A DNA stretch of 64,000 bases, from positions 90,231-154,230 of the forward strand of contig NW_013657613.1 of assembly GCF_000142905.1 (NCBI RefSeq), read 5' to 3'. Within the stretch, counting starts at the first letter, position 1; every line of letters starts with the position of its first letter. Positions 1-51,349 of this stretch are shown one piece after another. Source of the DNA: Thecamonas trahens ATCC 50062 (lineage: Eukaryota > Protista > Apusomonadida). The position numbers and the translations under genes were made by a program. The notes beneath the pieces are model-generated. The model was not told the DNA's origin and did no database searches. It was given only the letters and a program-made list of their open reading frames with translations.

Positions 1-1204
1 CCGACTCCACACCGGGCGTTCGCGCTGCAATCTCGGCACCAATTGAGTACGCTTTGGCGGCGTCGGCGTGGTGGCGGAGATGGTCGTGCTCGACTGCAAT
101 GTTGTTAAAAACGCCAAGGATGGTGCGGAGCATGGCGGCGTCGCCGGGCACCTGCACAATGTGCGACTCCGCCTCTTCGCCCGAGGCCACAGCCGTAAAC
201 CGCGAGAAAAACTCGCGAATGTATGGTGCAAGCAACGACTTGGCCTCTATCCCTGCCTGCAGCGCATCTTCGTGTGCGTCGAGCTTGGAGTGGCACGCGC
301 TCATGTTGAGCAGCGTTTGCGCCACCGCAAGCTCGTCGCCGGCCTCAGACTCGAGCCGCAGCGCGGCTGCAAGCAGCCGCAACGCCGTCCGTGGCCGCTT
401 GATCCGCCGCTGCAGGAGCGCAGCGTTGTTGAGCCACGCAGCTTCCAGCCGCGCCTCGCCAAACTTGGCCAGCGCTGCTTCGGCCGCAGCCAGTAGCACC
501 GACGCTGTCCGTTCCACCGCACCGGCCGACGGCGGAACCATGACTGATGCCGAGCCAAACTTGCGCGCGTCGGCCAAGCTCGGCAGCAGGCCCTTGGCAT
601 CGTTAGCAGGACTCGCTGCCGCATCAAGCAGCAACGCCGCCGCCGCTGCTGTGGTGTACTCGATGAGATGATGAGCAGCACGGGTAGCATGATCCGAGCT
701 CGCGCCGTAGCCCCTGATAGTCAACCGCAGTCGCTCGCGCAGAACTGCATAGCCATGTGGAGTATCCAGCGCCGCCAGCGATGGCGGATGATCCGCCACA
801 TCTCCCAGCTCGGCCAACCGCGCTGCGAGCTTTGCGTCGGGCCGCCGCTCTGTCTGCGACACTGTCGACGACGATGACGCCGGCCGCTCCGACCGTCCCA
901 CCAAGCCGCTGGTAGCAGATACATCTGTTGACCGAGCTGACCACTCATGCGAGCCGTCATCCGACGCATCGAGAGAGAACGAGTCGAGATGGTCATCATG
1001 ATGATAAGGATCATCGACGTCGGGGTCATCACCATGATTGTCGCCATTGCCTCCATGGTGCTCTGCGCTATCTGAAGGACCATGATCACGGTCTGTCGCG
1101 AGACCAGCGTCTGTTGTCGGCGATGCGGTGACGACGACCCATCCGTCAGCACTCTCGTCATCAGTCACACCAACCGCACCGCCATCTCTGTCCGACTGCG
1201 ACAT
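1..1204 (-). CDS. TPR-like helical repeat protein, 3' end runs off the window
   Basis: Hand translation from ATG 1204 gives MSQSDRDGGAVGVTDDESADGW..., open to the window edge (absent from the ORF track because there is no stop). The C-terminal part has TPR-like helices: ELAVAQTLLNMSACHSKLDAHEDALQAG and LGVFNNIAVEHDHLRHHADAAKAY. Confidence 0.7.
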   Translation of the reverse strand, partial: MSQSDRDGGAVGVTDDESADGWVVVTASPTTDAGLATDRDHGPSDSAEHHGGNGDNHGDDPDVDDPYHHDDHLDSFSLDASDDGSHEWSARSTDVSATSGLVGRSERPASSSSTVSQTERRPDAKLAARLAELGDVADHPPSLAALDTPHGYAVLRERLRLTIRGYGASSDHATRAAHHLIEYTTAAAAALLLDAAASPANDAKGLLPSLADARKFGSASVMVPPSAGAVERTASVLLAAAEAALAKFGEARLEAAWLNNAALLQRRIKRPRTALRLLAAALRLESEAGDELAVAQTLLNMSACHSKLDAHEDALQAGIEAKSLLAPYIREFFSRFTAVASGEEAESHIVQVPGDAAMLRTILGVFNNIAVEHDHLRHHADAAKAYSIGAEIAARTPGVES

Positions 1205-1827
1205 GTTTGGCGCCAAGGAGGTGAGGACGGAGGGAGGGGGAAGGGGGGCGAGTTGGGGAGGATGGCGAGAGATAGAGGTAGTCTGAGGGCGAAGCAGAGA
1301 GTGTGGTAGCCTTCTTATATGCAGGGGCAAGGAGGCGGAGTGAGGTGTTGTCGGTAAGAGATTATGACTACGTGGGGGAGGGAAGGGAAGCTGACTGCGG
1401 GCAGGTGGTCGTCCTCGTTGATCACGATCGCACCCAACCAACTGTGGTGATCGATCAACCGGTTGGTGATGGGAGAAGGATGGAGAAGGGGAAAGCAACA
1501 CAACGTGAAGGGCAAGGGCGACCATCTGCATACACATACAACATAGTAAACACCGCAAGGTCGGTGTGTATGGTAACGGGAAACAAAGATGCACATGTCT
1601 ATCATCCTCACACCATCTTGCTATTTCACCTTGACTTGGTTTTGCCATGATCAACAAAAGGTCGTCAAGTTTGCATGCGTCCGAAACAAGGACGATCATG
1701 ACAAGAGGGGGTGAGGAGCCGGGCAGAGGTGACCTGGTATAGGCAAGGGGAAGAGTACAAGCAAGAGCAAGCACTTCTCTCTAAGGAAAGAGAGAGGGTG
1801 TTACTGAGCGAGGAGGGGAGGAAAAAC

Positions 1828-2796: not shown

Positions 2797-2807
2797 GGAG
2801 CGAAGAT

Positions 2808-3372: not shown

Positions 3373-3403
<31 letters not shown>

Positions 3404-4840: not shown

Positions 4841-5318
4841 TTTGAGCCGATCTGCCGATGCGGCCGACTTGGCCTCGTCATGATCACCACGGGGTGTGAT
4901 TTGGACGGGATATGGTACCAATTCAATTCCTGGATGGCTGTGAGGGGGGGAGGAGAGAGAGAGAGAGAGAGAGAGGGAGCGCATCATGCGGTTGCGATTT
5001 GTGGTCATCATCAGCAATCCTAATACTGATTCTGATCCTGATCCTGATCCTGATCCCGATCTCGATCTCGATCCCGATCTCGATCCCGTTCCTCATCTCC
5101 ATCCCCAACCCCCCCCAACCCCATCCCCATCCCCATCCCCATCCCCATCCCCATCCCTCCTCTCTCCCCCCCTTCCTGCTCGCATCAACCCGTTTCTTTT
5201 GCCGCCACTGGCGTTTCAGCCAAGGTAGCAGTCGGGGAGAGACACGGGAGGAATCTGCGGCGAGACGGCAACACTTGTCGCTGACAGCTGTGGCAACCAA
5301 GGGGCCATACAACAGAAA

Positions 5319-9636: not shown

Positions 9637-11804
9637 CTACACCAGCAGCGCGTCTTGGTGCTTGCCTAGAAGTGCTTGCTCAAAGTTGGCGACGAGGCCC
9701 AGGTCAAACGGATTGAAGAAGCCACCGTCGTCGTCCTTGAAAATCTCGTAGCGGTCCGAGTTGAGCCGCTCGTTGGTGGTGAGGTTGCGTGAGGTCTGGT
9801 ACAGCATCTGGAAGGTGAGATGAACCATCCAGATGAGGAACGGCGTGTTCCAGACAACTGCAAGGCAGAGGAGCGGAGCGGTGTTGAGCATGGCGACGAG
9901 CGAGGTGAGCGAGGTCGGCGAGTACGGGGTGACAGAGGCGACAAGGTGGAGGAAGAGCAGCTCGGCGAGAGCAAAGAGAGCGACAAAGGCGACAAAGGCG
10001 CCCATGTTGTTCTTGCCGACGCAAACACCGAGCCAGGGACAATGGTGGTCGAATCGCTCAACGCAGACACCGCAGGTCGAGCAATGCTTTGAGCGCAGTG
10101 GCCGGATGATGAGGCAGGTCGGGCAGAGATTTGAGGGTTTCGTGCCTGCGGCGAGCATGTCACTCATGACCTCAGCCTGGGCGGCGGTGGGGACTATCCG
10201 CGGCGTCGTCCCAGGCTGCGAGTTGCGGAGCCAAAGAAAGATGCCCAGCGTGGCAAAGGAGAGAAGCCAGAAGAGGCAGAGCTCGAGCGGGGCGGCGACA
10301 AGCGCGGGCGGGACGATGTACATGACGACGGCCGGGACCGAGAGGAGGCTGGCCGCCGCAAAGATACCGATCTGTAGCGCCTCGATGTAGTGTGCAGTGA
10401 GGCGAGCATTGGAGACCTCGCCGTCGCCGTCGGGCGTGCTGAGCGCGAGCCACGAGTGCTTGTTGGCGTACCGAACAATGCCGGTAAAGACCTTGAAGCC
10501 AAAGGAGACGAGGACGAGGATGGTGAAGAGCGCAAAGAGCGGGTGCATGACTGCAGCTACGCCGGCACACGCTGCCACCATCACGCACGCCAGGGTGCTC
10601 ACAACCCGTTCTGACGATGTGGCCAGTGGCCGGCCACACGCGTTCACACCGACCTTCGAGACCGAGAGCCTCGGCGGGACGAGGGCTTGCTCGACAAAAC
10701 CTCCGTGCTCGCGCAGCGGGGTGATCTTGCCGCCTGCGGCCGTGGCAAAGCGCTCGGCAGCCTCGAGGAGCGAGACGACCTTGGGCGCGCCGACGGCACG
10801 GGCCCAACCAATCGGGGTCTCGCCGTCGGAGCAGTGGGCGGCTAGGACGGAAGCGAGGGCGTCGGGCGAGGTCGCGAGGGCCGAGACCAGAAGCTCGGCC
10901 GGCCGCTCGTGCTTCATGGCTGCTGCCCAGTGCAGAGCAGTCATCCCATCAGCTCTGCACGGCACATCGATCCGAGCTCCGGCGCGCAGCATGAGCGCCA
11001 CCATGGCGGACGACCCTTCGTACGCCGCACGCATTAGCGGGGTGTGCCCCTGCTCATCGCGGACTTCGCAGTCTGCGCCTGCATCCAGGAGCACCATAGC
11101 CGGAAAGACACAGCTGGCGGCCACGGCAGCGTGAAGAGCAGTAACTCCGTGGCCATCAGCTCCGTTGACATCCGCGCCAAGCGCAAGAACCCAGCGCGTT
11201 GCGCGGACCGATCCGGAGAGCGCCGCCACTGTCAGCAGCGGCGGCGAGAAAGCGCCTGGAGTCGTCAAGCAAGGAAGAGCGCCAGTCTCCATCACAGCCT
11301 CAGCCATGGCAACACTCGGTCTTCCCAACGCCGCATGAAGCAGCGATCTGCCGATGCGAGGCCCAAACGCAAGTTGCTCTGTCTCTGCCTTTGCCATCAG
11401 CGCCCGTGCCTCTGCCAGCGATCCATGAGCCACCGCCTTGACGAGTTGTGGAGCCGGATGCGAGTGTCCATGCTACTACCAGCACCAGTTTGGCCAGTCC
11501 CAGCAGCAGCTCGATCAGTCCCAGCAGCAGCTCGATCAGTCCCAGCAGCAGCTCGATCAGTCCCAGCAGCAGCTCGATCAGCCCCAGCAGCAGCTCGACC
11601 ACCATCACCATCCCTACAACCATCACCATTCCCACAGCCATCACCATCTCCACAGCCATCATCGTGATCCACTTGCCTATCTCTTCTCCCAGCACCCGTC
11701 AGAGCAAGCGCCGTCGACTCGAGCGGTAGCGTCTCGCCCTGTGCAGCACGAAGACTCGGTCCTGCGAGACTCGCCCATACGCCTTCCAGGTCCGAAGCGG
11801 TCAT
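9637..11804 (-). CDS. Ankyrin-repeat DHHC palmitoyltransferase (AKR1/ZDHHC17-like); 5' structure uncertain
   Basis: Ankyrin repeats (GVTALHAA, GHTPLMRA, GMTALHWA) and the DHHC-CRD CPTCLIIRPLRSKHC..C..CVERFDHHCPW, with TTNE and NPFD. The main frame is open from 11472. It joins ATG 11804 either by an intron 11780-11473 (GTATGG..TAG) or by a 1-nt frameshift. Confidence 0.92.
11495..11598. repeat. 21-bp tandem repeat CAGTCCCAGCAGCAGCTCGAT, ~5 copies
   Basis: Read directly in the 5' region of the DHHC gene. Confidence 0.9.
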
Positions 11805-11980
11805 GGAGGTGGGGAGGGGAGGGTATGAAGATGTGGTGTGTGGTGATGTGTGTGTGCGTGGTGATGTGTGTGTATGTGTGTGTGTGTATGGGCAGTGAGT
11901 GCGGGTGGCGGATGTGGGTGGCGGTGTTTGAGAGGGTTTGGGCCTGCGGATGTGTGTTTTCTGAATTGTGTATGGTACGG

Positions 11981-12380
11981 ACGGATTGTGTGCAGATCAT
12001 ACGGATTGTGCGCAGATCATACGGATTGTGTGCAGATCATACGGATTGTGCGCAGATCATACGGATTGTGCGCAGATCATACGGATTGTGCGCAGATCAT
12101 ACGGATTGTGTGCAGATCATACGGATTGTGTGCAGATCATACGGATTGTGCGCAGATCATACGGATTGTGCGCAGATCATACGGATTGTGTGCAGATCAT
12201 ACGGATTGTGCGCAGATCATACGGATTGTGTGCAGATCATACGGATTGTGCGCAGATCATACGGATTGTGCGCAGATCATACGGATTGTGTGCAGATCAT
12301 ACGGATTGTGTGCAGATCATACGGATTGTGCGCAGATCATACGGATTGTGCGCAGATCATACGGATTGTGCGCAGATCAT
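11981..12380. repeat. 20-bp minisatellite ACGGATTGTG(C/T)GCAGATCAT x20
   Basis: 20 contiguous units with a single variable position and no spacers. Confidence 0.98.
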
Positions 12381-12716
12381 AACGATGGATGATGGGATCG
12401 ACATGGCTTTGGGTATGTGTTGGAAGTATGTGTATTTCTGATGTTGGGGTTACGGCGGCGGAGAGGCGGGTGGGGTTACCCATCGCATCCCATCGCATCC
12501 CTCTCCCCTTGCCATCTCCACACTGTCATCATCGAACTGATAAAAGGCATGTCGACCACGAAATGGGCCAAACATGTCCCTCCTTCCCCACCGCAGCGTT
12601 ATCACCACCACCATGAGTCAATGTCATGATCATGATCACCGCCACGATCGATCACCCCCATGATCGATCACCCCCCCTCCGCCCACCCCGCCCTCGCCCA
12701 CACCCCACTCACCATC

Positions 12717-14659: not shown

Positions 14660-15802
14660 ATGCTCAGAATATCTCGTGGGAGCCTCGGCCGCCTCGCTAG
14701 CGGACGTCTCGCTATGGTCGCGCGGCCTGGAGCAGCTGGCGGCAGCGAGAGTGAGTCGCAAGCAGAGTCATCGCCTCGGGCGGCAGCCATAATGGGGCCG
14801 ACTGGGCCGACTGGGCCGACTGGGCCGACTGGGGCGATGGGCGCAATGGGCGCGATGGGCACTGTGGCGATGCGACGATGGATGTCGGACATGGTCCCGC
14901 TGCCGCCGGGAGTGGTCGATGGCGTGGCTGAGGACAAGGGCCGTCTGCTGGCGGCGAGCTCGGCGTGGGATGCTGGTGCGACGCTGCTGGTGGAAGAGCC
15001 CTTTGTCTGGGTCCCCAACCCGAGCGCTCTCAACTCGCTCTGCACACACTGCTTGGCCGATCTGGAGCCGGCGGCCTCGTTTGGCTGCCCTTCGTGCGAC
15101 CGGCCCATCTTCTGCTCGGGATCGTGTCACGCCATGGCTGCCTCGGGCTACCACGGCCTCGAGTGCGAGGCCTGGGGCCTTTATGAGCGCGATGAGGCTG
15201 CGCCGGACGCCTCGCCGCCGCTTTATCGCACGCTGCGGCACTCACGTCACACGCTTCTTGCTGCACGGTACGTCTCGATGCTGATGTCCCATCTCAAGCG
15301 CGGCGACATGGACGAGGTCTCCACCCTCAACACCCAGATCGGAGAGCTCATGGGTCGTGGCATCTCGTTTGCCGATGATCCTGCGCTCCTCGCCGCCCAC
15401 AAGGGCCTGGCCAAGACCGTTCTCGCCGAAGGCGACAACGCTACAGCCTTTGACGCCAAGTGGTTCGACGTGCTCATGGGCAAGTTCCAGCTCAACTCGT
15501 TCAAGATCGAGGTCCCGGCGCCCGATGGCGGCTGGCGCGACCTGGGTGTCGGCCTCTACCGCCACGCCTCCAAGATCAATCACTCTTGCGAGCCGAATGT
15601 CCAGGTCCAGTTTGGCGCAAACGCTCGCAAGCCGGCCAAGCTCACACTTGTGGCGCTCGCAGACATTGCTCCGGGCGACGAGCTGTGCATCGCCTACTGT
15701 GACCCGGACGAGACCATCTCGCAGCGTGATCACTATCTGGCCACAGCCTACGGCTTTGACTGTGGCTGCGCCAAGTGTCTTCGCGAGCGGAGCAAGGCGT
15801 AA
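14660..15802 (+). CDS. SMYD-type SET/MYND lysine methyltransferase
   Basis: Split SET domain (DKGRLLAA...GATLLVEEP). MYND cysteines (CTHC, CPSC, FCSGSC, H..EC). Motifs SKINHSCEPN and GDELCIAY, and post-SET YGFDCGCAKC. Confidence 0.92.
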   Translation: MLRISRGSLGRLASGRLAMVARPGAAGGSESESQAESSPRAAAIMGPTGPTGPTGPTGAMGAMGAMGTVAMRRWMSDMVPLPPGVVDGVAEDKGRLLAASSAWDAGATLLVEEPFVWVPNPSALNSLCTHCLADLEPAASFGCPSCDRPIFCSGSCHAMAASGYHGLECEAWGLYERDEAAPDASPPLYRTLRHSRHTLLAARYVSMLMSHLKRGDMDEVSTLNTQIGELMGRGISFADDPALLAAHKGLAKTVLAEGDNATAFDAKWFDVLMGKFQLNSFKIEVPAPDGGWRDLGVGLYRHASKINHSCEPNVQVQFGANARKPAKLTLVALADIAPGDELCIAYCDPDETISQRDHYLATAYGFDCGCAKCLRERSKA

Positions 15803-18805: not shown

Positions 18806-18871
18806 GGTGGTGGTGGTGGTGGTGGTGGTGGTGGTGGTGGTGGTGGTGGTGGTGGTGGTGGTGGTGGTGGT
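18806..18871. repeat. (GGT)n microsatellite abutting the APC2 start codon
   Basis: About 22 units, read as (CCA)n-CC-ATG on the coding strand. Confidence 0.95.
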
Positions 18872-19084
18872 GAAGTGGGTGGCCTTGTCCTTGCCCTGCC
18901 CTTAGGTCGGTGGCGCCGTGGTTGGCGCCAACTCACTCGCTACTGGCACTCACTGGCATCTTCAAATTGCTGGTGGTCGGGAGCGAATGGTGAGAGGGAT
19001 GATGAGGAGAACATGCACAGTGTGTGTAGAGGGATTTAAAAAAAAGGACCAAGATCGGCTGTTTCTGGGTGTTGATGGTCTTCT

Positions 19085-21475: not shown

Positions 21476-21705
21476 ATGGTGATGATCAGGCAGCCTGCGC
21501 ATACTTAGTCTCCTATCCCCATCACGCACCTGGCCATCATGGCGAGTCTGAATCCAAACTTGGCGCGCAGCGCCAAGGCGTGCTTCCCGCCCCACCCGCA
21601 CCCATCACCTCCAAGCATCAGCTACGGCCACTCCACCCCCACGTGCAACCCCCACCCAGACAAACCACACCGAATACATCTTTTCTATATACTCACCGAG
21701 TTTCA

Positions 21706-30895: not shown

Positions 30896-30995
30896 NNNNN
30901 NNNNNNNNNNNNNNNNNNNNNNNNNNNNNNNNNNNNNNNNNNNNNNNNNNNNNNNNNNNNNNNNNNNNNNNNNNNNNNNNNNNNNNNNNNNNNNN
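30896..30995. other. Assembly gap (100 N)
   Basis: Run of N. Confidence 1.
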
Positions 30996-34469: not shown

Positions 34470-34603
34470 TGACGACGATGATGACCATGATGATGATGAA
34501 CATGATGATGATGAACATGATGATGACCATGATGACCATGATGATGACCATGATGATGATGACCATGATGATGATGACCATGATGATGATGAACATGATG
34601 ATG
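34470..34603. repeat. (GAT/CAT)-based trinucleotide repeat tract
   Basis: GATGATGACCAT/GATGAACAT units read directly. Confidence 0.9.
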
Positions 34604-36818: not shown

Positions 36819-37249
36819 CTCTACTCATCTCCTCCGTAAACTCCCTCCCTCCCTCTTCTCCCTCCCGCCCGCCCATCCCCCAATCCGATCACGACCCCCT
36901 CAAGCCCCCCCTCCCCTCCCCCACCTTCGCCCTCTCCCGCAACCGCTTCTCTCCGCGCCGTCCTCCGAGTACGTACGATCGATCACGATCACGATCACGA
37001 TCACGATCACGCACCTCCCCCCTCTCCCGCCTCCCCCCTTCCCCCCACAACCCCCCACAAACTCACGTCCTCTACCCCCCTACCCACCGGTGCGGTTCCC
37101 TCTTGCTGTCGGCGTGCGTGCGTGTGTGTGCGTGTGCGTGTGCGTGTGTGTGTGTGACTTGACGACGAACGCGACTTGGACGTGGCGAAAACGGGGCGAA
37201 TGGCAAATGGGCGCCAAAAGTGACGACGCCGCCACTCAAGCCGCTGCCG

Positions 37250-38945: not shown

Positions 38946-41261
38946 TCAGCGAAGGCCCGAGCGGGGGCGCGAGGAGCGAAAGAGCGCCGACTGGGCGGCG
39001 GCGGCGCGGCGGGCCTGCCAGACGCGCGAGGCGATGACGGCGAACCAGAGGGCAAGGGTGAGGACAGACGACCACATCTGGGTCCGCTCGAGGTTTGCAC
39101 GTGAGGGATCATGGGCGCAGCGGACGTGTGTGTGGAGGGTGCGACCGGCTGCGTGGACGAGGCCGTGCAGGGCCTTGACGTCGTGCTTGAGCGAGCGGGC
39201 AAAGTAGATGGCGTCGTCCCAGCGGTTGAGCGAGGAGGAGAGAGCGACGCGCTCGAGCTTGTAGCGGACGACAGCCCAGCGGAGGAGAAAGTCCTCGACT
39301 TGGGCGGTGCCAAGGAGCTGCGAGAGCTCCTTGGAATACTTTGAAAAGTGAGCAAAGAGCCCCTGCAACTCGATGAGGGTGGTGTTGACGTGGGCGTAGA
39401 CGGCGTGGCGGGCGGCGGCGTCGCGAAGCGCAAACGACGAGGCCAGCTCGGTGGCGTACGGGCCAAACGGGGTGCCGGTGAGTGACCAGAGGTAGTTTTC
39501 GTCGAGGTGGCCGTCACGGGCCTGTGACGACGCGAGATGGGTCGGCGTGATGCCAAAGATAGCCGAGAGGAGGGCGCCGGCGAGAGCCGGGTACGGTGCG
39601 CCCTTGTCGACACTCACGCCCGAGCTCGCGTCGCCGGCGACCTGGCAAGTGTGGGCGGTGTAGAAGGAGCCTGACGTGGAGACGCCGACGACAACGTCTG
39701 CGGCGCCGAGGGCGAGATGTTCGAGATCGAGGAGGAGCTCCTCTTCGTCGAGGTGGAGGAGGAGGACCGGGATGACGCGCGAGGTGTCGGTAGCGTCTGT
39801 GCCGTGAGGGGCAGCAGCAGCGGCGGCGCTGGTGCGAGGCGGGCGGCGCTCACGCCGGGCGGCGCGGAGCTCGGCATCTGCGGCAGCGGCGGCGGCGGCG
39901 ACATGTGCGAGCTCGGCTTCGTCAGTAAAGTGGAAGAGTGGATGCTGCGAGCGGACGAGGTCAAAGAGGGCGGCCGAGTCAAGGTAGTGGTGAAAGGCCA
40001 TCGAGTGGGAGGCGTAGACGTCTGACTCGAGGGCGGTGAGGTAGGTCTTGCGGGCGTGAGCGAGGGCGTACTGGCAGATGGGGCAATCGGAGCGGGTGAG
40101 AAAGGTGGTGGCCGAGGTCAGCTGCTGGCCAGGCAGGGCATGGTCGTTGACAAAGGCCATGACCTCGGCAAGGCGGGCGCCGACCGCCATACGGGCGTCG
40201 TCAGCGGCAAGCGAGTCGTCGCCGACGACCACAAACTTGATCTGGATGTGCTCGGCGTCAGCGGCGGAGTCCCAGAGCGGCGGGAGAACGAGGTGCTTGA
40301 CCGACGACCAGACGAGGGCGGCAAGGTCGGCAAGGAGGAGCTTGGCGTTGGGCGCGGCGTCGAGCCGCGGGAGGGTGTACCACTCGACGATGCCAGCGCC
40401 GGCGAGCTCGGGCCCGTAGTGCGCCGGACCTGCGCCAAAGTCGAGCCAGGCGTAGCGGGCGTCAGCCGAGGCATGAACTGGCGCGCCGCAAGGCGAGGAT
40501 GAGGTTGACGTCGTGTCGCGATAGAGGTAGATGCGCCCGCCTGCTCTGGGATTCTCCAAGTTGAGCAAGTAGAAGGTGTAGCCATCTGCGGCGGCGACCG
40601 AGTCTGCATAGACCGGAGCGAGGACGTCATCAATGACGGCAAAATCGACCATGACAACTTGCGGGGAGATGTTTGGATGGAAGGGATCATGAGGACCCTG
40701 CTCAGCCTCAGCCTCTGCCACTGCGGCAGCGAGAGCGCCTTGCAACTCTGCAGCGAGCGATGGATGAGCCTTTGTGACATCAAAGACGACACGGGGATGA
40801 ATGGGACCATACGACGACGACGACGATGATGACGATGACGATGATGACGATGACGATGACGATGATGACGATGACGATGACGATGATGGAGCATCTGGCG
40901 AGAGAGCGGAAGCCGCGAGAGCATGAAGAAAGACATGCAACTGTTCATCATCGACATCGACAGCAGCAGCAGCATCACCATCCATACCCACCAGAACCAC
41001 ATGAACATATACAGTATCAGTATATGTAGCAACATCAGCAAGTCGTTCTTCAAGTGGTCCATCAACAAGCGCATCATCTCGCCACAGTGCTCGTCGTTGC
41101 TCTCGTCCAAGTGCAAGAAAGCCATCGTCTCGTGCCCAGGGGTCACTCGCCGGCGTGTACGGGAGCTTGGAGAAGACAGACGCAGGTGTCTTGGCTGTAC
41201 TGCCTTGGGTCGAGAGGAGGAGAAGGACGAGGAGAAGGACGAGGGTCTGCCGGTGGGGCAT
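38946..41261 (-). CDS. Signal-peptide/type-I membrane protein of an uncharacterised family (resembles plant At3g28720/At5g58100 type)
   Basis: Signal peptide MPHRQTLVLLLVLLLLSTQG. Motifs VHVVLVG, FYLLN, RYAWLDFGAGPAHYGP, YLDS and YLWS..TPFGP. C-terminal TM segment plus basic tail. The family assignment is from memory. Confidence 0.75.
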   Translation of the reverse strand: MPHRQTLVLLLVLLLLSTQGSTAKTPASVFSKLPYTPASDPWARDDGFLALGREQRRALWRDDALVDGPLEERLADVATYTDTVYVHVVLVGMDGDAAAAVDVDDEQLHVFLHALAASALSPDAPSSSSSSSSSSSSSSSSSSSSSSSSSYGPIHPRVVFDVTKAHPSLAAELQGALAAAVAEAEAEQGPHDPFHPNISPQVVMVDFAVIDDVLAPVYADSVAAADGYTFYLLNLENPRAGGRIYLYRDTTSTSSSPCGAPVHASADARYAWLDFGAGPAHYGPELAGAGIVEWYTLPRLDAAPNAKLLLADLAALVWSSVKHLVLPPLWDSAADAEHIQIKFVVVGDDSLAADDARMAVGARLAEVMAFVNDHALPGQQLTSATTFLTRSDCPICQYALAHARKTYLTALESDVYASHSMAFHHYLDSAALFDLVRSQHPLFHFTDEAELAHVAAAAAAADAELRAARRERRPPRTSAAAAAAPHGTDATDTSRVIPVLLLHLDEEELLLDLEHLALGAADVVVGVSTSGSFYTAHTCQVAGDASSGVSVDKGAPYPALAGALLSAIFGITPTHLASSQARDGHLDENYLWSLTGTPFGPYATELASSFALRDAAARHAVYAHVNTTLIELQGLFAHFSKYSKELSQLLGTAQVEDFLLRWAVVRYKLERVALSSSLNRWDDAIYFARSLKHDVKALHGLVHAAGRTLHTHVRCAHDPSRANLERTQMWSSVLTLALWFAVIASRVWQARRAAAAQSALFRSSRPRSGLR

Positions 41262-42557: not shown

Positions 42558-43474
42558 CGCTTCGCTGCCAGTGACAGCGGACGACGAGCCGGGCTCCAGC
42601 GTGTGCGGGCAGATCTCGGCACAGCCGCCGCCTGCTCGGGCGACGGCTGCGCCGGTCGATATGGGGGCTAGCACGCCATCATGACTTGTCACAGCGCGAC
42701 ACGCAGTCGCTTCAGCTCCATTGTCTCCGCGATGGAGGCGATGGAACCGCGTAGATGGCGAGGATGATGGGAGAGGTGGCGAGCACCTTCGAATAGAAAG
42801 TTCGAGAGGCAATGGACAACAAGCGCGGTGCGTTTGCCAGAGAAGGATATCATATCATGGATGAGAGAGCAAGGTGTGTGCAGGGCATCGGAAGACTACA
42901 ACTGCATTTCGATGAGAACAAGAATGTGAGGTGGCAAAGAGCCGTGTGTGACGACGGTGTGATGGCATTGCGCAGGGTTTTATGGAGGAAAAGATGCCAT
43001 TTTCTTTGAATGCTGAGAAGAGCCAACGGAATGGAAGGCTCTTCTTTCCCCTCCGCCCACTCTAGTCGAATGGCGCAGACAAACGGCGATGACTCGTTCG
43101 TTGTGTATGGGGGGGGGGAGGGGGGGAGGGGGGGGGGAGAGGATGATTGCGTTTGGCTACGGTTGAGAGCTGCTCGGGCGGATGAAGACGACAACAGCGA
43201 ATCGATTGTGGCCGATAACTCTCCGGCGACCCTCCTCGACCTCAATGGTGGCCTTCAGCTAATCCGCCCTTCGCATCGGGCACTTGCTGGCGGACGTGGT
43301 GACGATGTGCTGGTGGTGGTGGCGGACTTGTTGACGGACAAATTCAGCTCGGGCAAAGTGGAGTGGAGAACGGCATGGGGCAACGGCAGCGAGGAGAATG
43401 GTGAGAGTCTGGTGGCCTGGTGGCAGACTCGACGTAGTACTACCGCTTGGCAGCAGCAGGCGCTGGGCGTGGTT

Positions 43475-46018
43475 ATGCTTCGTGAACGAGTGGCGGCTCG
43501 AGAAGGAGGCGGCGGAGTGGGCGAGGTGGCGACCGATGCGGGAAGAGGCGCGACGGGCGCCACAGGCTTGGGCGCCATGGCGGTACATTCCGGAGGGAGA
43601 TTGGAACATGGCGGAGGGCTGAGTCGAGGAGCGGTGGCGATCCTAGGCTGTGTGGCTCTGCTGGTGGTGTGGATGCTGGCGACTCATCTGCCGTCGCGCG
43701 AGTCGATGGCGTTGGCGGTGATGGGCGGTGGCAGTGATCCGCCGGCGCTCCCGAAGCGGTTGCCGTGGCTCTCGTTTGCGCCGGCGTACGAGCCGACGCT
43801 TGTGGTGTACGCGTACTATGAAAATGTCAAGCACGGGTACGATGCTAATCTGCGGTATCTGCTCGCCACCATTGCGCCTGATGACGGCGTCGACTACGTG
43901 TTTGTGGTCAACGGCGTGTCCAGCCGCATCGAGTGGCCGTCGTACGAGAATGTGCGAGTGGTGAGCAAGGGTAACGAGTGTTACGACTTTGGCGGCTATG
44001 CCGCGGGCCTGCTGGCGGCGGCAGGCATGTCGTCGGCGTCGGTCGTCGACGATGCTGCCGAACTCTCGGTCGCGCTCGCGGCCAAGTACTCGCGGTTTGT
44101 GCTGATGAACGGCTCTGTGCGTGGCCCGTTTGTGCCGGCATATGTGGGTAGGGAGCTTGGGCACTGGACCGACTTGCTGGGCTCACTCCTGAGCCAGACG
44201 GTCAAGCTCGCGGGGACGACGATCAACTGCCAATGCGCGCGCAAGCCCGGCAGCGACGACCGGTGCTCGCCGCATGTCCAGTCGATGGTTCTTGTGACGG
44301 ACACGATTGGGCTCAACGTGCTCCTTGCTTCGGGCTCGGTCTTCAAGTGCTACACCGAGATCTACGACGTGGTCTACTACTCGGAGCTTGGGGCGTCTGC
44401 GGTAGTCCGCGAGGCCGGCTACGACATTGCCTCGCTGCTGATCAAGTACGACGGAGCCACGTTTGTCGGACCGGACACGATGGCGTGCAACGCCAAGGGC
44501 AATCCAACATACCAGAACCACTACGACGGCAACATGCTGCACCCGCTTGAGGGCATGTTTGTCAAGTCCAAGGCCAATCAGTCGACGCTGGCCGACATGG
44601 TCGCGCTCCTCTCGCCGCCTGATCTGACGCCATCCCTGCCGCCGGCGCGGGTGCCAGCACCGGCCACCGGTCTCCCGCCGCTGGATCGGCGGCTGTGGGG
44701 CGCGACGTTGGCGGCACACGCCACGCTCGCGTCGGCGTGTGGGCTTGCGTCCAACGTGTCAGTCGCGGCGTGGATGGGGACGCCGACGGCGGCGCGTGCC
44801 GATGGTGGAGGCATCGCACACGCCCAACTGCCGCACGCGTCGGCGCACAGCCACGGCCACACACCGTTGGTGCGCTCGGATCCGGCGCTGGCGCTGGGTG
44901 TGGTGGCACCGGAGCGGCGGGCGTGGGTGAGCCGTGGGTGCAAGGCGCTGGCGAAGACCCGCTCGTGGCCGCGGCTGCACCACTCGCTGCCGGTGCTCCT
45001 TCCGGGCGTCGCCGAGCTCCCTGCCGAGCCGTCGCCGACGCGGCCGAGCGCACAGCGCAGCGTGGACAAGGGCGATGCCAGGGCGCTGGTTGTCGTGCCT
45101 GTGGCGAGTCTGCCAACGCCGCGGCAGGCGGACAACATTGCGTGGCTGGCGGCACGGAGTCGCGGCGCGAAGCTGCTCCTCCTTGCAGCGTCGGAGGCTA
45201 TTGCTCGTGAGCTCAAGGCTGCCGGAATGACCGCAGCCGCGACGGTGCGGGTTGTGGAATGCAAGCGAGAAGTTGATGAGGCCGGGTTGCTCGCGGCGGT
45301 CGAGGCCGACGTGATTGACGTTGCACAGGCCTCGGTTGTGGTGGCGGTCTCGGCCTCGCTCCGCGGACCATTTCTTCCTGTCTACGCCAAGGGCATCGCA
45401 TGGTGGGATCTAGTGAGGAGGGCGGAGGGCGACACGGAGTGCGCGTCGTCGCGGATATACGGGGGGTACCTGTTCCGGATAGCGACGGACTGGAGCGGGG
45501 TGCTCGATCCGAGCTCGGCTGTGACCGGGCTCGCGCTTACAGCATGTGGCACTGTGCCGGGCGCGGTCTCCCCGCTGGAGACCGTGTTTGTGCCGTACGG
45601 ATCTGCCGCGGACGACGATACGCTGACGGGTGGCTGGGCAAGGGCTTACTCGCGTTACGCCGAGGCACCGGATCGCGACGCCAACGCGCTGGCGCCGACG
45701 GCTGCGGTGGCGGCTGGAGCCGACGACGCGCTCGCGCTGGAGCTTGCGGTCATGGCGGCATGCGATCTCGAGTTTGACGACGAGTACTTTCAAAAGCGGC
45801 ACAACTATGTGCTCGCGCCGGGCGGTGGGTACCTCCCGCTCTTTGCCGAGTACGACGATGGCTTTGCGTTCTGGAAGGCCGAAGGCTTCCGCACCGGCAA
45901 GCACTACAAGTTCCGTCCGGCGAGCAACGGCCTCGCCGGCTCGGCCTGCCACGGCCTCACCCTCTACGCGCGGCAGTACAACGGCATGGTTGTGTTGGCG
46001 CATCCGTCCGAGTACTAG
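43475..46018 (+). CDS. Type-II membrane putative glycosyltransferase (RgpF-like motifs) with a second degenerate domain copy
   Basis: TM segment AVAILGCVALLVVWML. Motifs LVVYAYYE, NLRYLL, NECYDFG, FVLMNGSVRGPFVP, PHVQS, ELGAS and HPLEGMFVK. The second copy has SASLRGPFLP..SPLETVF. The start is uncertain (43010, 43475 or 43577). Confidence 0.7.
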   Translation: MLRERVAAREGGGGVGEVATDAGRGATGATGLGAMAVHSGGRLEHGGGLSRGAVAILGCVALLVVWMLATHLPSRESMALAVMGGGSDPPALPKRLPWLSFAPAYEPTLVVYAYYENVKHGYDANLRYLLATIAPDDGVDYVFVVNGVSSRIEWPSYENVRVVSKGNECYDFGGYAAGLLAAAGMSSASVVDDAAELSVALAAKYSRFVLMNGSVRGPFVPAYVGRELGHWTDLLGSLLSQTVKLAGTTINCQCARKPGSDDRCSPHVQSMVLVTDTIGLNVLLASGSVFKCYTEIYDVVYYSELGASAVVREAGYDIASLLIKYDGATFVGPDTMACNAKGNPTYQNHYDGNMLHPLEGMFVKSKANQSTLADMVALLSPPDLTPSLPPARVPAPATGLPPLDRRLWGATLAAHATLASACGLASNVSVAAWMGTPTAARADGGGIAHAQLPHASAHSHGHTPLVRSDPALALGVVAPERRAWVSRGCKALAKTRSWPRLHHSLPVLLPGVAELPAEPSPTRPSAQRSVDKGDARALVVVPVASLPTPRQADNIAWLAARSRGAKLLLLAASEAIARELKAAGMTAAATVRVVECKREVDEAGLLAAVEADVIDVAQASVVVAVSASLRGPFLPVYAKGIAWWDLVRRAEGDTECASSRIYGGYLFRIATDWSGVLDPSSAVTGLALTACGTVPGAVSPLETVFVPYGSAADDDTLTGGWARAYSRYAEAPDRDANALAPTAAVAAGADDALALELAVMAACDLEFDDEYFQKRHNYVLAPGGGYLPLFAEYDDGFAFWKAEGFRTGKHYKFRPASNGLAGSACHGLTLYARQYNGMVVLAHPSEY

Positions 46019-46044
46019 CCAGGCATCGTTGGGTGGTTGCGCTT

Positions 46045-46280
46045 GTGGTTGTGGTTGTGGTTGTGGTTGTGGCTGTGATTGTGATTGTGATTGTGATTGT
46101 GATTGTGATTGAGGTTGTGGTTGTGGTTGTGGTTGTGGTTGTGGTTGTGATTGTGATTGTGATTGTGATTGTGATTGTGATTGTGATTGTGATTGTGATT
46201 GTGATTGTGATTGTGATTGTGATTGTGATTGTGATTGTGATTGAGGTTGTGGTTGTGATTGAGGTTGTGGTTGTGGTTGT
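46045..46280. repeat. (GTGATT)n/(GTGGTT)n hexamer microsatellite
   Basis: Read directly upstream of COX10. Confidence 0.95.
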
Positions 46281-46489: not shown

Positions 46490-47716
46490 ATGTTCCGGGG
46501 AGCGGTGATTGGCCGTGGCCTGCTTGGCGGCGGACGGATGTGCGGTCTGCAGCAGCTGAGGGGCGCCATGCGTAGCATGAGCATGAGCAGCAACAACAGC
46601 AGTGGCTCAGAATCTATGAAAGCACCTACCAATGCCGTGGCGGCAGCAGTGGAGGCAGCAGCAGCAGCAGCAGGAGCAGCAGGAGGCAGAGCGGGTGGCA
46701 CTCAAGGCAGCGCGACATCCACGGCTGAGGCGACGACGACGACGACGACGGGGAGCAGGAGCAAGGACATGGGGGAGAGTATGGGCATTGCAGGGCATCT
46801 CAAAGCATACGCTGGACTGTCAAAGGCCAGACTCTCTCTATTGGTCGTCCTTACATCTGCTGCTGGCTATGGTATGGCTCCAGCTGCGCTCTGTACCCTC
46901 CCTCATGGCGCGGCTATGATGGCTACGGCAGTCGGAACAGGCCTCTGTGCCGGTGCTGCCAATGCTCTCAATCAGAGCATCGAAGTTGCTCATGATTCAA
47001 AGATGCATCGGACAAAGACCCGCATCTTGCCCACCGGCAAGCTCTCCGTCAACCATGCGCTTGGCTTTGCTGCTGCCTCGGGCACGGCCGGTGTCGGGCT
47101 CCTCGCCGCTGCCTCCAACCCGCTCACCGCTGCTCTGGGCGCCGGCAACATTGCCCTCTACGCAGGCCTCTACACTCCGCTCAAGCGAGTGCATGAGATC
47201 AACACCTGGGTCGGCGCCCTCGTCGGTGCCATCCCGCCCATGATGGGCTACGCTGCCTGCATGGGCACCATCGATGCCACTGCTGTCTACCTCGGCGCCA
47301 CCCTGTTCTCATGGCAGATGCCGCACTTTATGGCTCTCGGCTACAACCTCAAGGACGACTACCTGCGCGGCGGGTACAAGATGATGCCGTCGTTTGATGC
47401 GCCCAAGGCTGCGGCGGTCTCGCTCCGGCACTCGGCTGCACTGGGCGCTATGGGCGTCGCCGCCCCGCTCATGGGCCTCACGACCCCGCTCTTTGCCCTC
47501 GGCGCCACCGGCGTCAACGCCATCCTCATCGCCCGTGCTTGGTCGTTCTACTCTTCGCCAAACAACGCCACCGCACGCGCGCTCTTCCGCACCACCCTCT
47601 GGCACCTCCCGCTCCTCCTCACCATCATGCTGCTGACCAAGGCCGCGCTGGAGGACGAGGCCGCGCCGGCTGAGGACGCCGACCGCGGCGCCGATGTGCC
47701 GGCTGCAGTGGCATGA
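46490..47716 (+). CDS. COX10: Protoheme IX farnesyltransferase (heme O synthase), mitochondrial
   Basis: Motifs LSKARLSLLVV, ANALNQ..E...DSKMHRTKTR.LP, YTPLKR, NTWVGALVGAIPPMMG, WQMPHF and DDYLRGGYKM. Arg-rich presequence from ATG 46490. Confidence 0.96.
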   Translation: MFRGAVIGRGLLGGGRMCGLQQLRGAMRSMSMSSNNSSGSESMKAPTNAVAAAVEAAAAAAGAAGGRAGGTQGSATSTAEATTTTTTGSRSKDMGESMGIAGHLKAYAGLSKARLSLLVVLTSAAGYGMAPAALCTLPHGAAMMATAVGTGLCAGAANALNQSIEVAHDSKMHRTKTRILPTGKLSVNHALGFAAASGTAGVGLLAAASNPLTAALGAGNIALYAGLYTPLKRVHEINTWVGALVGAIPPMMGYAACMGTIDATAVYLGATLFSWQMPHFMALGYNLKDDYLRGGYKMMPSFDAPKAAAVSLRHSAALGAMGVAAPLMGLTTPLFALGATGVNAILIARAWSFYSSPNNATARALFRTTLWHLPLLLTIMLLTKAALEDEAAPAEDADRGADVPAAVA

Positions 47717-47806
47717 GTCACTCGCGAACCGAGTATTCACGCACTCACTACTCCCCCCCGAGTCTGCGATGGAAGGCCGACCTGCAGCGCTGTCGCTGCC
47801 GGCGGC

Positions 47807-48853
47807 TTAGGCCGACTCGCGGCGTGCGGCGGCGCGGCCGCCATGGGCGAGGACTACGGCGAGAACAAGCGGCGCAATCGAGTCAGCGGCATGGTTGACA
47901 AAGTCGTTAAAGTCTGCTGCAGCATCGCCTTCCATGGTGTCCGAGAGGGCGCGGACAACAAGGTACGGGACGCCAAAGGCGTGGCAAATCTGGCCAACGG
48001 CAGCAGCTTCCATGTCGACCGCCAGCGGCGAGCCGAGCTTCTCCCACAGCGGGCGGAGCTCGTTCTTGCGCGCCGTCGTCACAAACTCGGAGCCTGTCAC
48101 CACCCGACCGATGTGGAGGGCGGCATCCGGAGCGAGGACTTGCGGAGCGGCGTCTGACGCGAGCTGGAGTAGGACTGGATCGGCGGCAAAGGAGCGGAGA
48201 CCGTCAAGAAAGGGTAGCTCGCCACGCTTGTGGACGTAGTCGGGCTTGTGCGGGAGGACCAGGGCAGTGACGTCCATGTCGTAGTTGATGGTATCCGCCG
48301 CCAGGATGACATCGCCAACCATGTGATGGCCCATGAGACCGCCAGCCACGCCCGAGAACAGCACCGCATCGACATTGAATGCCGTGATAAGCATGGTGGC
48401 CACTGCAGCAGCATACACTTGGCCCACGTTGGATGCCACCAGCACCACATCGACCTCGGCAGCACAGCATTCCGATCCAGTTTCCGCACCAGGCACAGGC
48501 ACATCGGCTGCAAGCGCATCGGCTGTAGGCGCATCTGCGGCAGGCGCATCGGTATCGGTATTGGCGTTGGCAGGCGCATCGGCATCAGTATTGGTGTTGG
48601 CAGGCGCATCGGTATCGGTATTGGTGTTGGCAGGCGCATCGGTATCGGTATTGGCGTTGGCAGGCGCAGTCACATCGGCCGCAGCGACGAGGCAATGACC
48701 GCAGGGCGCAGCGGGCGAGCACCTTGCCTTGCCGAGATGAAAGGTAAAGAGGGAGCCCTTTGAGACGACAGTCACTTCGGTGAGTGCCTTGCGAAGGAGA
48801 GCAATCTCCACACCCATGGCTCCAATGATGCCGTAACTCCGTCGGTCGCTCAT
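47807..48853 (-). CDS. mtnN: 5'-methylthioadenosine/S-adenosylhomocysteine nucleosidase with a repeat insertion
   Basis: Motifs GIIGAMGVE, VG.VYAA, FSGVAGGL, GDVILA, YDMDVT, TGSEFV, AVDMEAAAVGQIC and VVRALSD. Confidence 0.9.
   Translation of the reverse strand: MSDRRSYGIIGAMGVEIALLRKALTEVTVVSKGSLFTFHLGKARCSPAAPCGHCLVAAADVTAPANANTDTDAPANTNTDTDAPANTNTDADAPANANTDTDAPAADAPTADALAADVPVPGAETGSECCAAEVDVVLVASNVGQVYAAAVATMLITAFNVDAVLFSGVAGGLMGHHMVGDVILAADTINYDMDVTALVLPHKPDYVHKRGELPFLDGLRSFAADPVLLQLASDAAPQVLAPDAALHIGRVVTGSEFVTTARKNELRPLWEKLGSPLAVDMEAAAVGQICHAFGVPYLVVRALSDTMEGDAAADFNDFVNHAADSIAPLVLAVVLAHGGRAAARRESA
48525..48670 (-). repeat. In-frame 30-bp tandem repeat (APANTNTDTD-like) x4
   Basis: Read directly inside the nucleosidase CDS. 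Confidence 0.9.
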
Positions 48854-49426
48854 ATGCTTTGTCTGCGGCGGAGATGAATGTGTTGGGAGGGGGGAGGAGG
48901 GAGGAGGGATGAGGAGCGGCTGACACAGTGACGGCGATCTGCACGTGGAGGGGGGTGAGCGGGGGGGGGGGAATCGGATGGTTGGCCTCTCAGAGTGGTG
49001 ATGGGGGGTGGTAGGGGAGGGGATGGCGGAGGTGATCGGGTTGGGTATGGGGAGGGGGGGGGGGGCTAAGCAGACGTGATGGGGGGAAGTGACCTATGGC
49101 GATGGATGGTGACGGGATGGACAGCCATGGTGATGATGGCGCCCAGCAGCTCACTTCCGACCATCACCAAGGTACTCTCATCCCCCACCGAGTCTATCGA
49201 TTGAAATGGGGTGGACAGTGCAAGTCATCGGGGAAGGCGGCTGTTCCGGGCGTGCGGGCAAGTCGGGCATGTCGGGCATGTCGGGCATGTCGGGCATGTC
49301 AGGCAGGCGGACAAGGCGGGCGGGGTAGAGACGGATTGGCGGATATCACCGCACTCTTCGAAGAGAGCAGGAGCGGCAGAGGGAGAGAGGGAGAGAGAGA
49401 GAGAGAGAGAGAGGGCCAAGTCGAGG

Positions 49427-51349
49427 ATGAGTCTAAGTAGCATGCCCTCTATGGGTATGCTGGCTGAGGGACGTGGAGGAGGAAGGCATGAGGCAGGGAG
49501 AGTCATTGGTGTGGTCGTGGCTCTGGTCGCCTTCCTCGCATCTTCGCTCCCTCCTGCCACTGCTGTCTTCCGATGGCTATTTGCGAAAAAGGATTTCGAT
49601 TATCCCATGGCTGCTGTGGTTGCTGCCAGCAGCATTCCCTTTGTAATGGCCATACTCTACTTTGCTGCGGTTGCTATGGCTTTCACTCCTTGGAGATCTT
49701 GGCGCTGTGGTGTTCATTCAGATCGCGCTCCGCATGCTCCGCCCTATCTCTCGCTCGTACGATTACTTTATGTTGGTGATCTCGTTGTCATTGTCTTGCT
49801 TTATGGTCTTGCTCATCTTGGTCTCGCGGTGGCTCTTGTATCGCTTCCGGTGCCGATGGTCCTGGCTTTGAGAGCTGCTCTGGCTCAGGCATGCTCGGCT
49901 GCGCTCCTCGTCCTGCGGTCGGATCGCGGACCGCTGGCCACGCTGCTGCCGGCCTTGGGTATGGGGGCACTCTGTCTGGTCATGGCCGTTGTCTTCATCT
50001 TTGTCGATTACGATGACGGCCTCGCCTTCCGCTCGCTGTCAACGAGCCAGGTCGCGGCGCTGGGCGTGCTCGCCGGCTCACGCGCTGCCGAGTTTGCCAC
50101 CGGAGCTGTGCTTCGGACGCTGACCGCGCTGCGCTGTGGGAGGGCGGCAGCCAGCGTGGCGCCCGTCGAGCTTACCGCCGACGAGGAAGCCGAGCAGGCT
50201 GCTCCGCGCGAGCTGCGATCGGCGCTCGGCCCGTTTGGTCGAGTCTGGGCCCACAACCCGGCATGGGCCGCGCACCTCTCCGAGGTCCGCGACACTGGCG
50301 TGTACGACGGCGAGCTTGTAGGCTTCTCGCGCGAGGCCACATTTGAGCTGCATGCACTGTGCGCCCTAGCGCTGCTGCCGCTGGCGGCCGGCGGTATGCT
50401 CGTCCGCGGCACGCCGCTGGCGGTTCTCGGCGACGTCGTGGCTGATGCGGCGAGCTCCGGCCGCGCGTTTCGGATTCTGTCGTCGCTCGTCTGGCTGGCC
50501 GCCATCCAGGCTGTGCGGCCGGTGGCTAACGCCCACATTGTCCTCCATGAGCACTCGGTGACGTACGTGACGGGCTCGGTGGTTGCGCTTGCCGCTGGCG
50601 TCGGCGGCGCGGTGGTGGTCATCCCCGGCGAGGCCGAGTCAGTCGGTGTACTTCAGTTTGTGGCCGTAGTTGTCATCCTCGCCTGTTTCAGCCTCTCGTG
50701 GCGGGTCACTTCCACCCTCCAGAAGCGGGCAACCAATGCTGCTCACGCCGAGACGCTCGTCCGCCTCCTTCCGCAACTGGCCGGCGCCATCGACATGGAC
50801 GCATACGTTGCGTCGGCGGCCGCCAGCCGGGGGGCCGGTGGCGGCGGCGGCCTCGAGCTTTCCTCGAACCAGCACTTGCTCGCGATGGAGCAATCATCGC
50901 TGGCGTCTGGGCATGGCAGAGGCAGCAGAGGTGCCGGCGCCGGCGACGACGGCGCCACCGGCCCGCTTGCTCTCAAGTCGCTCCTTGCCCGTGATTACTC
51001 GCACATCGGAGTTGAGGACGAGAGGCAGCTTGCGCGGCAGTCGTCGTTGCGGCCGACGCCGCTGGAGCGGCTCGACGCCCGGCGGAGCGAGTTTGCGGCT
51101 GCAGCAGCAGCTGAAGCCGAAGCCGAGGCCGCAGCAACTGCAGCATCGGCAGCAGCGGCAGCGGCAGCAGACGAGGTCGAGGCGGCGAATAGGCACCAAG
51201 CCGAGGTGGCGACTGATGTAGATGGTGCCACGCACGATGATGCCATCGGTCGGCCGGGCACGCCTGGCCCACGCCCGCCAAGCTCGACAACCCCTGCGAG
51301 ACAGGCGTCGGTCCGGAGCGCGATATCGCCGGCGTCGTCGTTGAGGTGA
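49427..51349 (+). CDS. Multi-pass membrane protein, weakly SLC35/triose-phosphate transporter (DMT)-like
   Basis: About 10 hydrophobic segments. WLFAKKDFDYP follows TM1, resembling the TPT-family 'F.YP'. Low-complexity C-terminal tail. Confidence 0.6.
   Translation: MSLSSMPSMGMLAEGRGGGRHEAGRVIGVVVALVAFLASSLPPATAVFRWLFAKKDFDYPMAAVVAASSIPFVMAILYFAAVAMAFTPWRSWRCGVHSDRAPHAPPYLSLVRLLYVGDLVVIVLLYGLAHLGLAVALVSLPVPMVLALRAALAQACSAALLVLRSDRGPLATLLPALGMGALCLVMAVVFIFVDYDDGLAFRSLSTSQVAALGVLAGSRAAEFATGAVLRTLTALRCGRAAASVAPVELTADEEAEQAAPRELRSALGPFGRVWAHNPAWAAHLSEVRDTGVYDGELVGFSREATFELHALCALALLPLAAGGMLVRGTPLAVLGDVVADAASSGRAFRILSSLVWLAAIQAVRPVANAHIVLHEHSVTYVTGSVVALAAGVGGAVVVIPGEAESVGVLQFVAVVVILACFSLSWRVTSTLQKRATNAAHAETLVRLLPQLAGAIDMDAYVASAAASRGAGGGGGLELSSNQHLLAMEQSSLASGHGRGSRGAGAGDDGATGPLALKSLLARDYSHIGVEDERQLARQSSLRPTPLERLDARRSEFAAAAAAEAEAEAAATAASAAAAAAADEVEAANRHQAEVATDVDGATHDDAIGRPGTPGPRPPSSTTPARQASVRSAISPASSLR

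Follow-up and report, generated by a model that had tools for sequence, protein, structure and literature searches.

Do ApT-rich gene starts in a GC-rich protist genome record the methylation of adenine in the DNA? The question is raised by a 64-kb stretch of the genome of the apusomonad Thecamonas trahens (hereafter the window; G000:C67:90231-154230 in a 28.7-Mb, 131-contig assembly), where the initial annotation had interpreted clusters of the ApT dinucleotide at the 5' ends of genes as a footprint of N6-methyladenine (6mA) domains proximal to transcription start sites (TSS), with repeat expansion supplying the ApT even to the detriment of protein sequence. With a probability of about 0.62, the ApT-rich starts are explained by ordinary composition, namely, a regionally variable lapse of the G+C enrichment at third codon positions (GC3) in the 5' parts of genes, combined with ordinary satellites; the sequence carries no sign of ApT being created for methylation. 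Under this explanation, the first ∼200-250 codons in a subset of regionally clustered genes would lack the GC3 enrichment of the remaining open reading frame (ORF). The GC-favouring force on the distal ORF, which we infer to be codon selection and/or GC-biased conversion, would prefer NAC codons over NAT, and where it lapses, NAT, and hence ApT, would be back to the neutral observed/expected (O/E) level of ∼1.0, with the ApT-rich starts and ApT-poor bodies being the appearance of this synonymous gradient. Superimposed on it, the spacers on the promoter side would contain ordinary micro- and minisatellites, and variable N-termini or loops would contain codon repeats of the slippage type, with GAT/CAT units in some of these repeats.

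The statistics were obtained for 293 kb (∼1% of the genome), which include the window, the 200 kb of C27:100001-300000 that serve as the independent sample, and three loci of 9-10 kb, with 119 genes altogether. In codons 1-100, 100-200, 200-300 and beyond 300, the fraction NAT/(NAT+NAC) is.299,.295,.221 and.187, respectively, and the control fraction NBT/(NBT+NBC), where B is any base other than A, is.334,.278,.250 and.271. The within-gene Mantel-Haenszel odds ratio (OR) for codons 1-200 versus 300+ is ∼2.3-2.4 for NAT, 1.5 for NBT and 1.1 for the two-fold NBT controls. In this codon comparison by position, which the initial annotation had proposed, the use of GAT over GAC, and of NAT over NAC in general, drops away from the start more than that of the NBT/NBC controls, in independent DNA as well. 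Across all long genes, GC3 climbs from 0.69 to 0.81 over ∼300 codons.

The level reached by ApT at the 5' ends is that of the intergenic DNA. In codon phase 2-3, ApT O/E is 1.00 at 5' ends and 0.71 in the distal ORF; the phase-specific 5' values of 1.00-1.17 are not above the intergenic (neutral) level of 1.0-1.1 in the spacers, and it is the distal ORF that is the NAT-depleted part. For the 16 NNY codon pairs, the 5'-versus-distal shift in log-odds is predicted by the distance between distal and intergenic trinucleotide usage (r=0.82, slope 0.46), so that 5' codon usage lies about halfway between the distal usage and the intergenic trinucleotide frequencies. The residuals of this regression are +0.29±0.10 for GAY, +0.24 for GCY, +0.15 for TAY, +0.09 for CAY and -0.07 for AAY, which places the NAY pairs within the scatter. 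In the 24 genes with a pronounced GC3 dip, the four-fold degenerate sites of codons 1-100 consist of A.195, C.277, G.288 and T.241, compared with A.191, C.307, G.310 and T.192 in intergenic DNA. The codon-resolved test thus leaves a small ApT-specific residue atop a general, regionally patchy GC3 dip.

The patchiness is pronounced, and the window contains the following run of genes:

2808-51349: ∼18 genes, nearly all of the scorable ones among which show a strong 5' synonymous GC3 dip together with a 5' ApT excess (per-gene table)

The change in GC3 (dGC3) in this run is between -0.13 and -0.39, and both the dip and the ApT excess are absent from the window genes beyond ∼52 kb. Examples of dip genes are those at 31272-32747, 38946-41261 and 49427-51349, and the gene at 52215-53993 exemplifies those without a dip. 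In the independent sample, dip and excess are moderate over the first ∼60 kb (C27:100-160 kb) and absent over the remaining ∼140 kb (166-300 kb). The window and the C27 sample differ in dGC3 (Mann-Whitney U test, p=2e-4) as well as in the corresponding ApT change (p=9e-5), the excess of NAT over NBT is far stronger in the window (OR 4.5 for NAT vs 2.4 for NBT), and the 5' GC3 values of neighbouring genes are autocorrelated (lag-1 r=0.25, p=0.007). The range for which the 6mA footprint had been claimed, 950-49460, coincides with the strong-dip region, that is, the pattern had been read off an unusually strong locus. Mis-called starts were rejected as the source of the low 5' GC3: dips occur within the conserved RRM (aa 7-77) and kinase (aa 19-271) domains. 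The length and orientation of the upstream spacer do not explain the dip either (rho -0.09). As in the known positional gradients of codon bias and GC3, the shift is purely synonymous, with 5' usage between the distal and neutral frequencies and a constant amino acid composition. It differs from these gradients in being unusually long (∼250-300 codons) and strong only in a chromosomally clustered minority of genes, and in that the bias is wholly lost in the affected genes, with intergenic-like four-fold sites.

The same heterogeneity is apparent in the dinucleotide counts. When all genes are pooled in a metaplot, ORFs start with an ApT O/E of ∼1.1 over their first 500 nt, and the value is ∼0.95 past 800 nt, ∼1.0 after stops and 0.76 in the 100 nt preceding the ATG; TpA is level at ∼0.45-0.55, and ApA and TpT are trendless. 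A TpA O/E of ∼0.45-0.55 is also observed genome-wide. When nt 1-600 of each gene were compared with nt 900 to the ORF end, ApT O/E in the window was 1.19 versus 0.95 (11 of 12 genes, p=0.005), with TpA and TpT unchanged and ApA lower at the 5' end, but the 5' rise in the independent sample (1.03 vs 0.98) did not reach significance (p=0.14). Likewise, the divergent promoters of the window have ApT O/E of 1.48 (1.24 once repeats are masked), whereas 26 independent divergent spacers show no enrichment (1.04); in tandem and convergent spacers, the value is ∼1.0-1.1. The 24 densest 150-bp ApT windows comprise 18 in spacers, 6 in the first 600 nt of ORFs and none in distal ORFs, and ApT-dense patches of 150 bp are 3.5 times more common in the window than in the C27 sample, in which the most 5'-enriched 4-mers are of the CCCC/AGGG type rather than ApT words. 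The reported ApT-dense starts with ApT-poor distal bodies, and the 5' enrichment of ApT beyond that of TpA, ApA and TpT under composition control, hold within the window, but the generality of the rise in ApT O/E is not supported by the independent sample.

The genome nevertheless appears to be equipped for adenine, and not for cytosine, DNA methylation. A whole-genome search with the PF05063 profile yielded three MT-A70 loci only, none of which is METTL3-, METTL14- or METTL4-like, and the search for the C5-DNA-methylase domain PF00145 gave zero hits. The first locus (C27:40123-40626, minus strand) covers the whole PF05063 profile at 132 bits, contains DPPW at residue 27 of the exon translation and, in a phmmer search against the Protein Data Bank (PDB), matches the Tetrahymena MTA1 chains (7f4r, 7yi8) at 242 bits (E 4e-71), compared with 135 bits for METTL3, ∼60 bits for METTL14 and 28 bits for a METTL4-type chain. 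By sequence similarity, it is an AMT1 ortholog, nearer to MTA1/AMT1 than to METTL3, METTL14 or METTL4, so that the case in which the footprint claim would fail for want of an AMT1-type enzyme does not arise. Its MT-A70 domain occupies an open frame that, up to the stop, is only 214 aa long (L005:4118-4687, minus strand), and therefore the N-terminal half must sit on a separate exon; this is one of the few clearly intron-containing genes observed. The ORF on C61, with MTA9/AMT7 as the top PDB matches (E 3e-17) and no DPPW-like motif, is identified by these matches as an AMT6/7-like partner of AMT1. The 1331-aa ORF on C31, with MT-A70 at aa 894-1071, DPPW at residue 900 and ZZ (two stretches) from aa 1138, is AMT2/5-like as judged from its domain order, because MT-A70 followed by ZZ finger(s) is the architecture of AMT2/5 (PMC12695648). 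In ciliates, Chlamydomonas, early fungi and many protists, post-TSS 6mA at ApT is deposited by AMT1/MTA1c (PMC12695648, PMC7145601). Given the presence of AMT1, AMT6/7 and AMT2/5 and the lack of a C5-methylase hit, TSS-proximal methylation of ApT is therefore a reasonable expectation in T. trahens, by analogy with the surveyed species (PMC12695648), and the gene-start ApTs are predicted to be probable methylation substrates. The resemblance to the AMT1/MTA1c systems includes this enzyme set, with DPPW in AMT1, a DPPW-less AMT6/7 and ZZ in AMT2/5, and the coincidence of the ApT-richer zone (the first ∼0.6-0.9 kb of ORFs) with the location of 6mA domains of this kind. In contrast to these systems, 5' ApT is no higher than in spacers, ApT flanked by C or G on both sides (SATS) is not preferentially enriched, and the compositional effect is regional rather than general.

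Could the methylation have left the gradient? A TSS-proximal domain of 6mA and H3K4me3 might select for ApT or bias mutation, repair or conversion such that A:T, especially in ApT, is retained at synonymous sites of the first ∼250 codons, and the regional clustering would then mirror which genes are methylated. Apart from the enzyme trio and the missing C5-methylase, a set of observations favours such a footprint or, at least, weighs against ordinary composition. The within-gene OR for NAT exceeds that for NBT (2.33 vs 1.50, difference-in-differences p=8e-5), and this excess is replicated in independent DNA (1.73 vs 1.25), where the effect of the preceding A is also independent of the next base. 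ApT ranks first of the 16 dinucleotides by the 5'/distal ratio of O/E at phase 2-3 (1.40), and the dip genes overshoot, with NAT at 0.51 versus 0.39 in intergenic DNA, although these genes were chosen for low GC3. ApT-dense patches within ORFs are 5'-biased (6:0 in the window and 6:1 in the C27 sample, 5' vs distal), whereas the TpA-, ApA- and TpT-dense patches of the C27 sample show no such bias. The scale of ∼750-900 bp is far beyond translation initiation and resembles a promoter-proximal chromatin domain, as would suit a post-TSS mark. The gene set consists of ORF-based models from a codon log-odds caller that carry neither TSS nor intron information.

Nevertheless, a methylation footprint is unlikely. 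The 5' ApT only reaches the intergenic level and is depleted immediately before the ATG, and in the independent sample ApT O/E does not rise significantly. The 5' regions showed no ApT periodicity at 160-200 bp, the nucleosome scale, in a test that had little power (22 and 30 genes), and expression, as approximated by codon bias, shows no correlation with 5' ApT (rho -0.08). The sequence contexts point in the same direction. In AMT1 species, SATS is methylated best and WATW/TAT worst (PMC12695648), but the 5'/distal ratio here is the lowest for SATS (1.13), intermediate for mixed contexts (1.27) and the highest for WATW (1.35), and it is 1.13 for VATB versus 1.56 for non-VATB. The contexts favoured by the methylase thus gain least at 5' ends, and substrate specificity of the 5' ApT rise is not supported. 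Regardless of position, SATS O/E is 1.5-2.0 throughout coding DNA and that of WATW is 0.2-0.3 in all sampled ORFs. The comparative data are mostly unfavourable, too. A survey of 18 species computed ApT O/E and compared the post-TSS ApT density of methylated and unmethylated genes (PMC12695648, Nat Genet 2025); the methylated genes are denser in ApT in some species, but most species show ‘no clear association' of ApT density with 6mA, and compositional effects were judged limited. The question whether 6mA shapes composition has therefore already been addressed, and largely answered in the negative, by that survey; a literature search found no paper that ties 6mA to codon usage. A narrower possibility, that the dip genes in particular carry a strong TSS-proximal 6mA/H3K4me3 domain that blocks GC-biased conversion or alters the mutation or repair of A:T, is distinctly improbable; if true, it would mean that the 6mA domains of these genes leave a heritable synonymous footprint, an adenine counterpart, opposite in sign, of the CpG decay under 5-methylcytosine. 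In general, an influence of 6mA on base composition would allow adenine methylation to be screened for by sequence only, and it would demonstrate a mutational or selective cost of the mark. What the present analysis contributes is the documentation of the full AMT1/AMT6-7/AMT2-5 toolkit, without a C5-methylase hit, in this protist, a sharper test in the form of NAT versus NBT by position combined with SATS versus WATW, and a flag on the unexplained regional heterogeneity of 5' synonymous composition.

The other two explanations fare worse. Weaker codon bias and lower GC near starts are widespread, and selection on translation initiation or mRNA folding, or else CpG decay, could underlie AT-rich 5' ends in general. 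On the coding strand, the first 600 nt of ORFs indeed have a lower CpG O/E (1.07 vs 1.19) and a higher TpG O/E (1.18 vs 1.09), with CpA unchanged, both in the window and in the independent sample (p ∼2e-4 to 5e-4), a strand-asymmetric 5' signature that is more general than the ApT effect. However, the gradient spans ∼250-300 codons, far past initiation effects, and is absent from most genes of the independent sample. An origin of NAT by CpG deamination (NAC|G to NAT|G) was rejected given that the BCG/BTG contexts shift least (logOR 0.26 vs 0.44), that, in the independent sample, the effect of a preceding A is seen regardless of the base that follows, and that the genome lacks PF00145; altogether, this group of causes is very unlikely to be responsible. 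The adaptive supply of ApT through repeat expansion, at the expense of protein sequence, is the least credible and can be all but discounted. The tracts on which the idea was based do exist (see below), and 10 ApT-rich tandem arrays fall within the first 600 nt of ORFs as opposed to 2 in distal ORFs (14.2 vs 1.7 per 100 kb), compared with 92.6 versus 64.3 per 100 kb for ApT-poor arrays. However, 6 of these 10 arrays come from the discovery window, leaving 4 versus 2 in independent DNA, and the ApT-rich share of the spacer arrays is alike on the 5' and 3' sides (15% vs 13%). ApT-rich arrays are more numerous in the 64-kb window (21) than in the 200-kb independent sample (13), and this larger ApT-containing share is the one difference from ordinary satellite expansion, to which the tandem arrays (3-30 bp, perfect or nearly so) found in spacers, linkers, N-terminal extensions and a loop that varies among homologs otherwise conform. 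Masking all tandem repeats leaves the ORs unchanged (2.31 vs 2.33 for NAT, and likewise for NBT), so that the supply of ApT by repeat expansion is not supported. Nor is there a cost to proteins in the form of forced His, Asp or Met inserts: among the 119 genes, the frequencies in codons 1-100 versus 300+ are 4.9 versus 5.6% for D, 2.3 versus 2.2% for H, 2.4 versus 2.1% for M and 2.8 versus 3.2% for I. No overall enrichment of D, H, M, I, N or Y was found in the first 100-200 codons, the differences within the window genes taken alone are non-significant, and in the dip genes, the FYMINK residues are lower at the 5' end.

The coding tracts that had been listed as inserts are found at these positions:

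990-1090, minus strand: D/H/G-rich tract, codons ∼38-75 of an ORF that leaves the left edge of the window (probable ATG at 1204)
14795-14842, plus strand: 9-bp repeat x5.4 encoding GAMGAMGAM, codons ∼55-65 of a SET-domain ORF
20550-20580, minus strand: DNGDDHHYD tract, codons ∼45-55 of a Rubis-subs-bind ORF
21795-21890, plus strand: MMMSKHGHEADQDHHHDHD, N-terminus of the CAP-Gly ORF 21580-23247, which was missed by the gene caller
30399-30419, minus strand: DHDDDDG tract in a chromo-domain ORF, ∼110 codons from its first ATG (30746)
30896-30995: assembly gap, into which the open frame of the chromo-domain ORF extends; the gap was left unbridged, and no result rests on it
32273-32332, minus strand: H/G/D hexamer-repeat tract, codons ∼137-160, part of the linker that joins RRM (aa 7-77) to PWI (aa 424-490)
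40812-40888, minus strand: poly-Ser in TCA/TCG codons, in a variable loop inside a DUF7906 match
46556-46590, plus strand: MRSMSMS tract, codons ∼58-65 of a UbiA prenyltransferase ORF (domain from aa 156)
48539-48668, minus strand: 30-bp repeat x4.3 encoding NTDTD-type repeats, codons ∼63-105 of a PNP_UDP_1 ORF (domain from aa 133)
49427-49460, plus strand: MSLSSMPSMGM, start of a 640-aa ORF without a Pfam match

Thus, seven tracts (near 14830, 20550, 32270, 40815, 46570, 48540 and 49430) fall into the reading frame of called ORFs, between codons ∼1 and ∼160, and those at 21795, 990-1090 and 30400 lie in the CAP-Gly, edge and chromo-domain ORFs, respectively. The exception is DHDDGCGDGDG (11600-11670), which falls outside the DHHC frame, in an upstream open frame (11400-11996) that ends at 11400, and is probably a non-coding 5' leader or promoter repeat. 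Except for poly-Ser, the coding tracts precede or link Pfam domains. At the poly-Ser position, DUF7906 homologs contain unrelated low-complexity fillers of differing length, according to a loop alignment drawn from 279 relatives of the DUF7906 protein that were found by exhaustive HMMER search; a word-index homolog search with the same protein gave zero matches. The coding tracts represent ordinary products of slippage in segments that tolerate them. The 49 codons between the gap at 30896-30995 and the ATG at 30746 are CT-rich, of low complexity and spacer-like, as is the far side of the gap.

The six non-coding tracts named in the initial annotation are all present in spacers on the promoter side of genes, which for four of the tracts are divergent promoters; they are given here along with the repeats that include the misassigned tract upstream of the DHHC-ankyrin gene:

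5017-5157: (GATCCY)n hexamer/12-mer microsatellite in the divergent promoter between a thioredoxin-PDZ gene (minus strand) and a squalene/phytoene synthase gene (plus strand)
11495-11661, minus strand: 21-mer x5 and 18-mer x3.4 repeats upstream of the DHHC-ankyrin gene (ORF ATG at 11397)
11981-12381: 20-bp minisatellite x20 (97% matches) that contains GATCAT, in a divergent promoter
12610-12675: CATGATC/GATCAC patch in the same divergent promoter as the preceding minisatellite, upstream of a TRIP13-like AAA gene
34470-34603: GAT/CAT 15-mer array in a divergent promoter; with 34 ApT in 150 bp, no patch of the window is denser in ApT
36977-37011: (CGATCA)5 microsatellite, 240 bp upstream of a protein-kinase ORF
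46043-46280: hexamer array x40 (consensus unit TTGTGA in Tandem Repeats Finder, TRF) between the stop of ORF 43010-46018 and the start of the UbiA ORF

The window as a whole, with GC of ∼62% and abundant micro- and minisatellites (142 TRF rows), has the appearance of an intron-poor, GC-rich protist genome, with long, mostly unbroken, closely packed ORFs that encode eukaryotic domains: CLU/TPR, APC2-cullin, DHHC-ankyrin, class-III aminotransferase, thioredoxin-PDZ, DEP-PH, squalene/phytoene synthase, TRIP13-like AAA, SET, RRM-PWI, protein kinases, UbiA, PNP_UDP_1, Cu-monooxygenase, chromo, SH3 and CAP-Gly. The tRNA and Rfam scans of the 64 kb gave zero hits. Assembly gaps at 56863-57119 and 62427-62621 are beyond the range of the ApT claim. 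Immediately upstream of the APC2 gene start, there is a 56-bp minisatellite x5.2 (18232-18520, 95% matches), followed by C-rich tracts and then by a perfect (TGG)22 array (18805-18872). The CLU open frame (22698-27278, plus strand) contains no in-frame ATG before the CLU domain (domain from ∼23391, first ATG at 23589) and overlaps the CAP-Gly ORF (21580-23247) in a different frame; this arrangement, at 21580-27278, could be a single CAP-Gly/CLU gene joined by an intron or could result from a frameshift.

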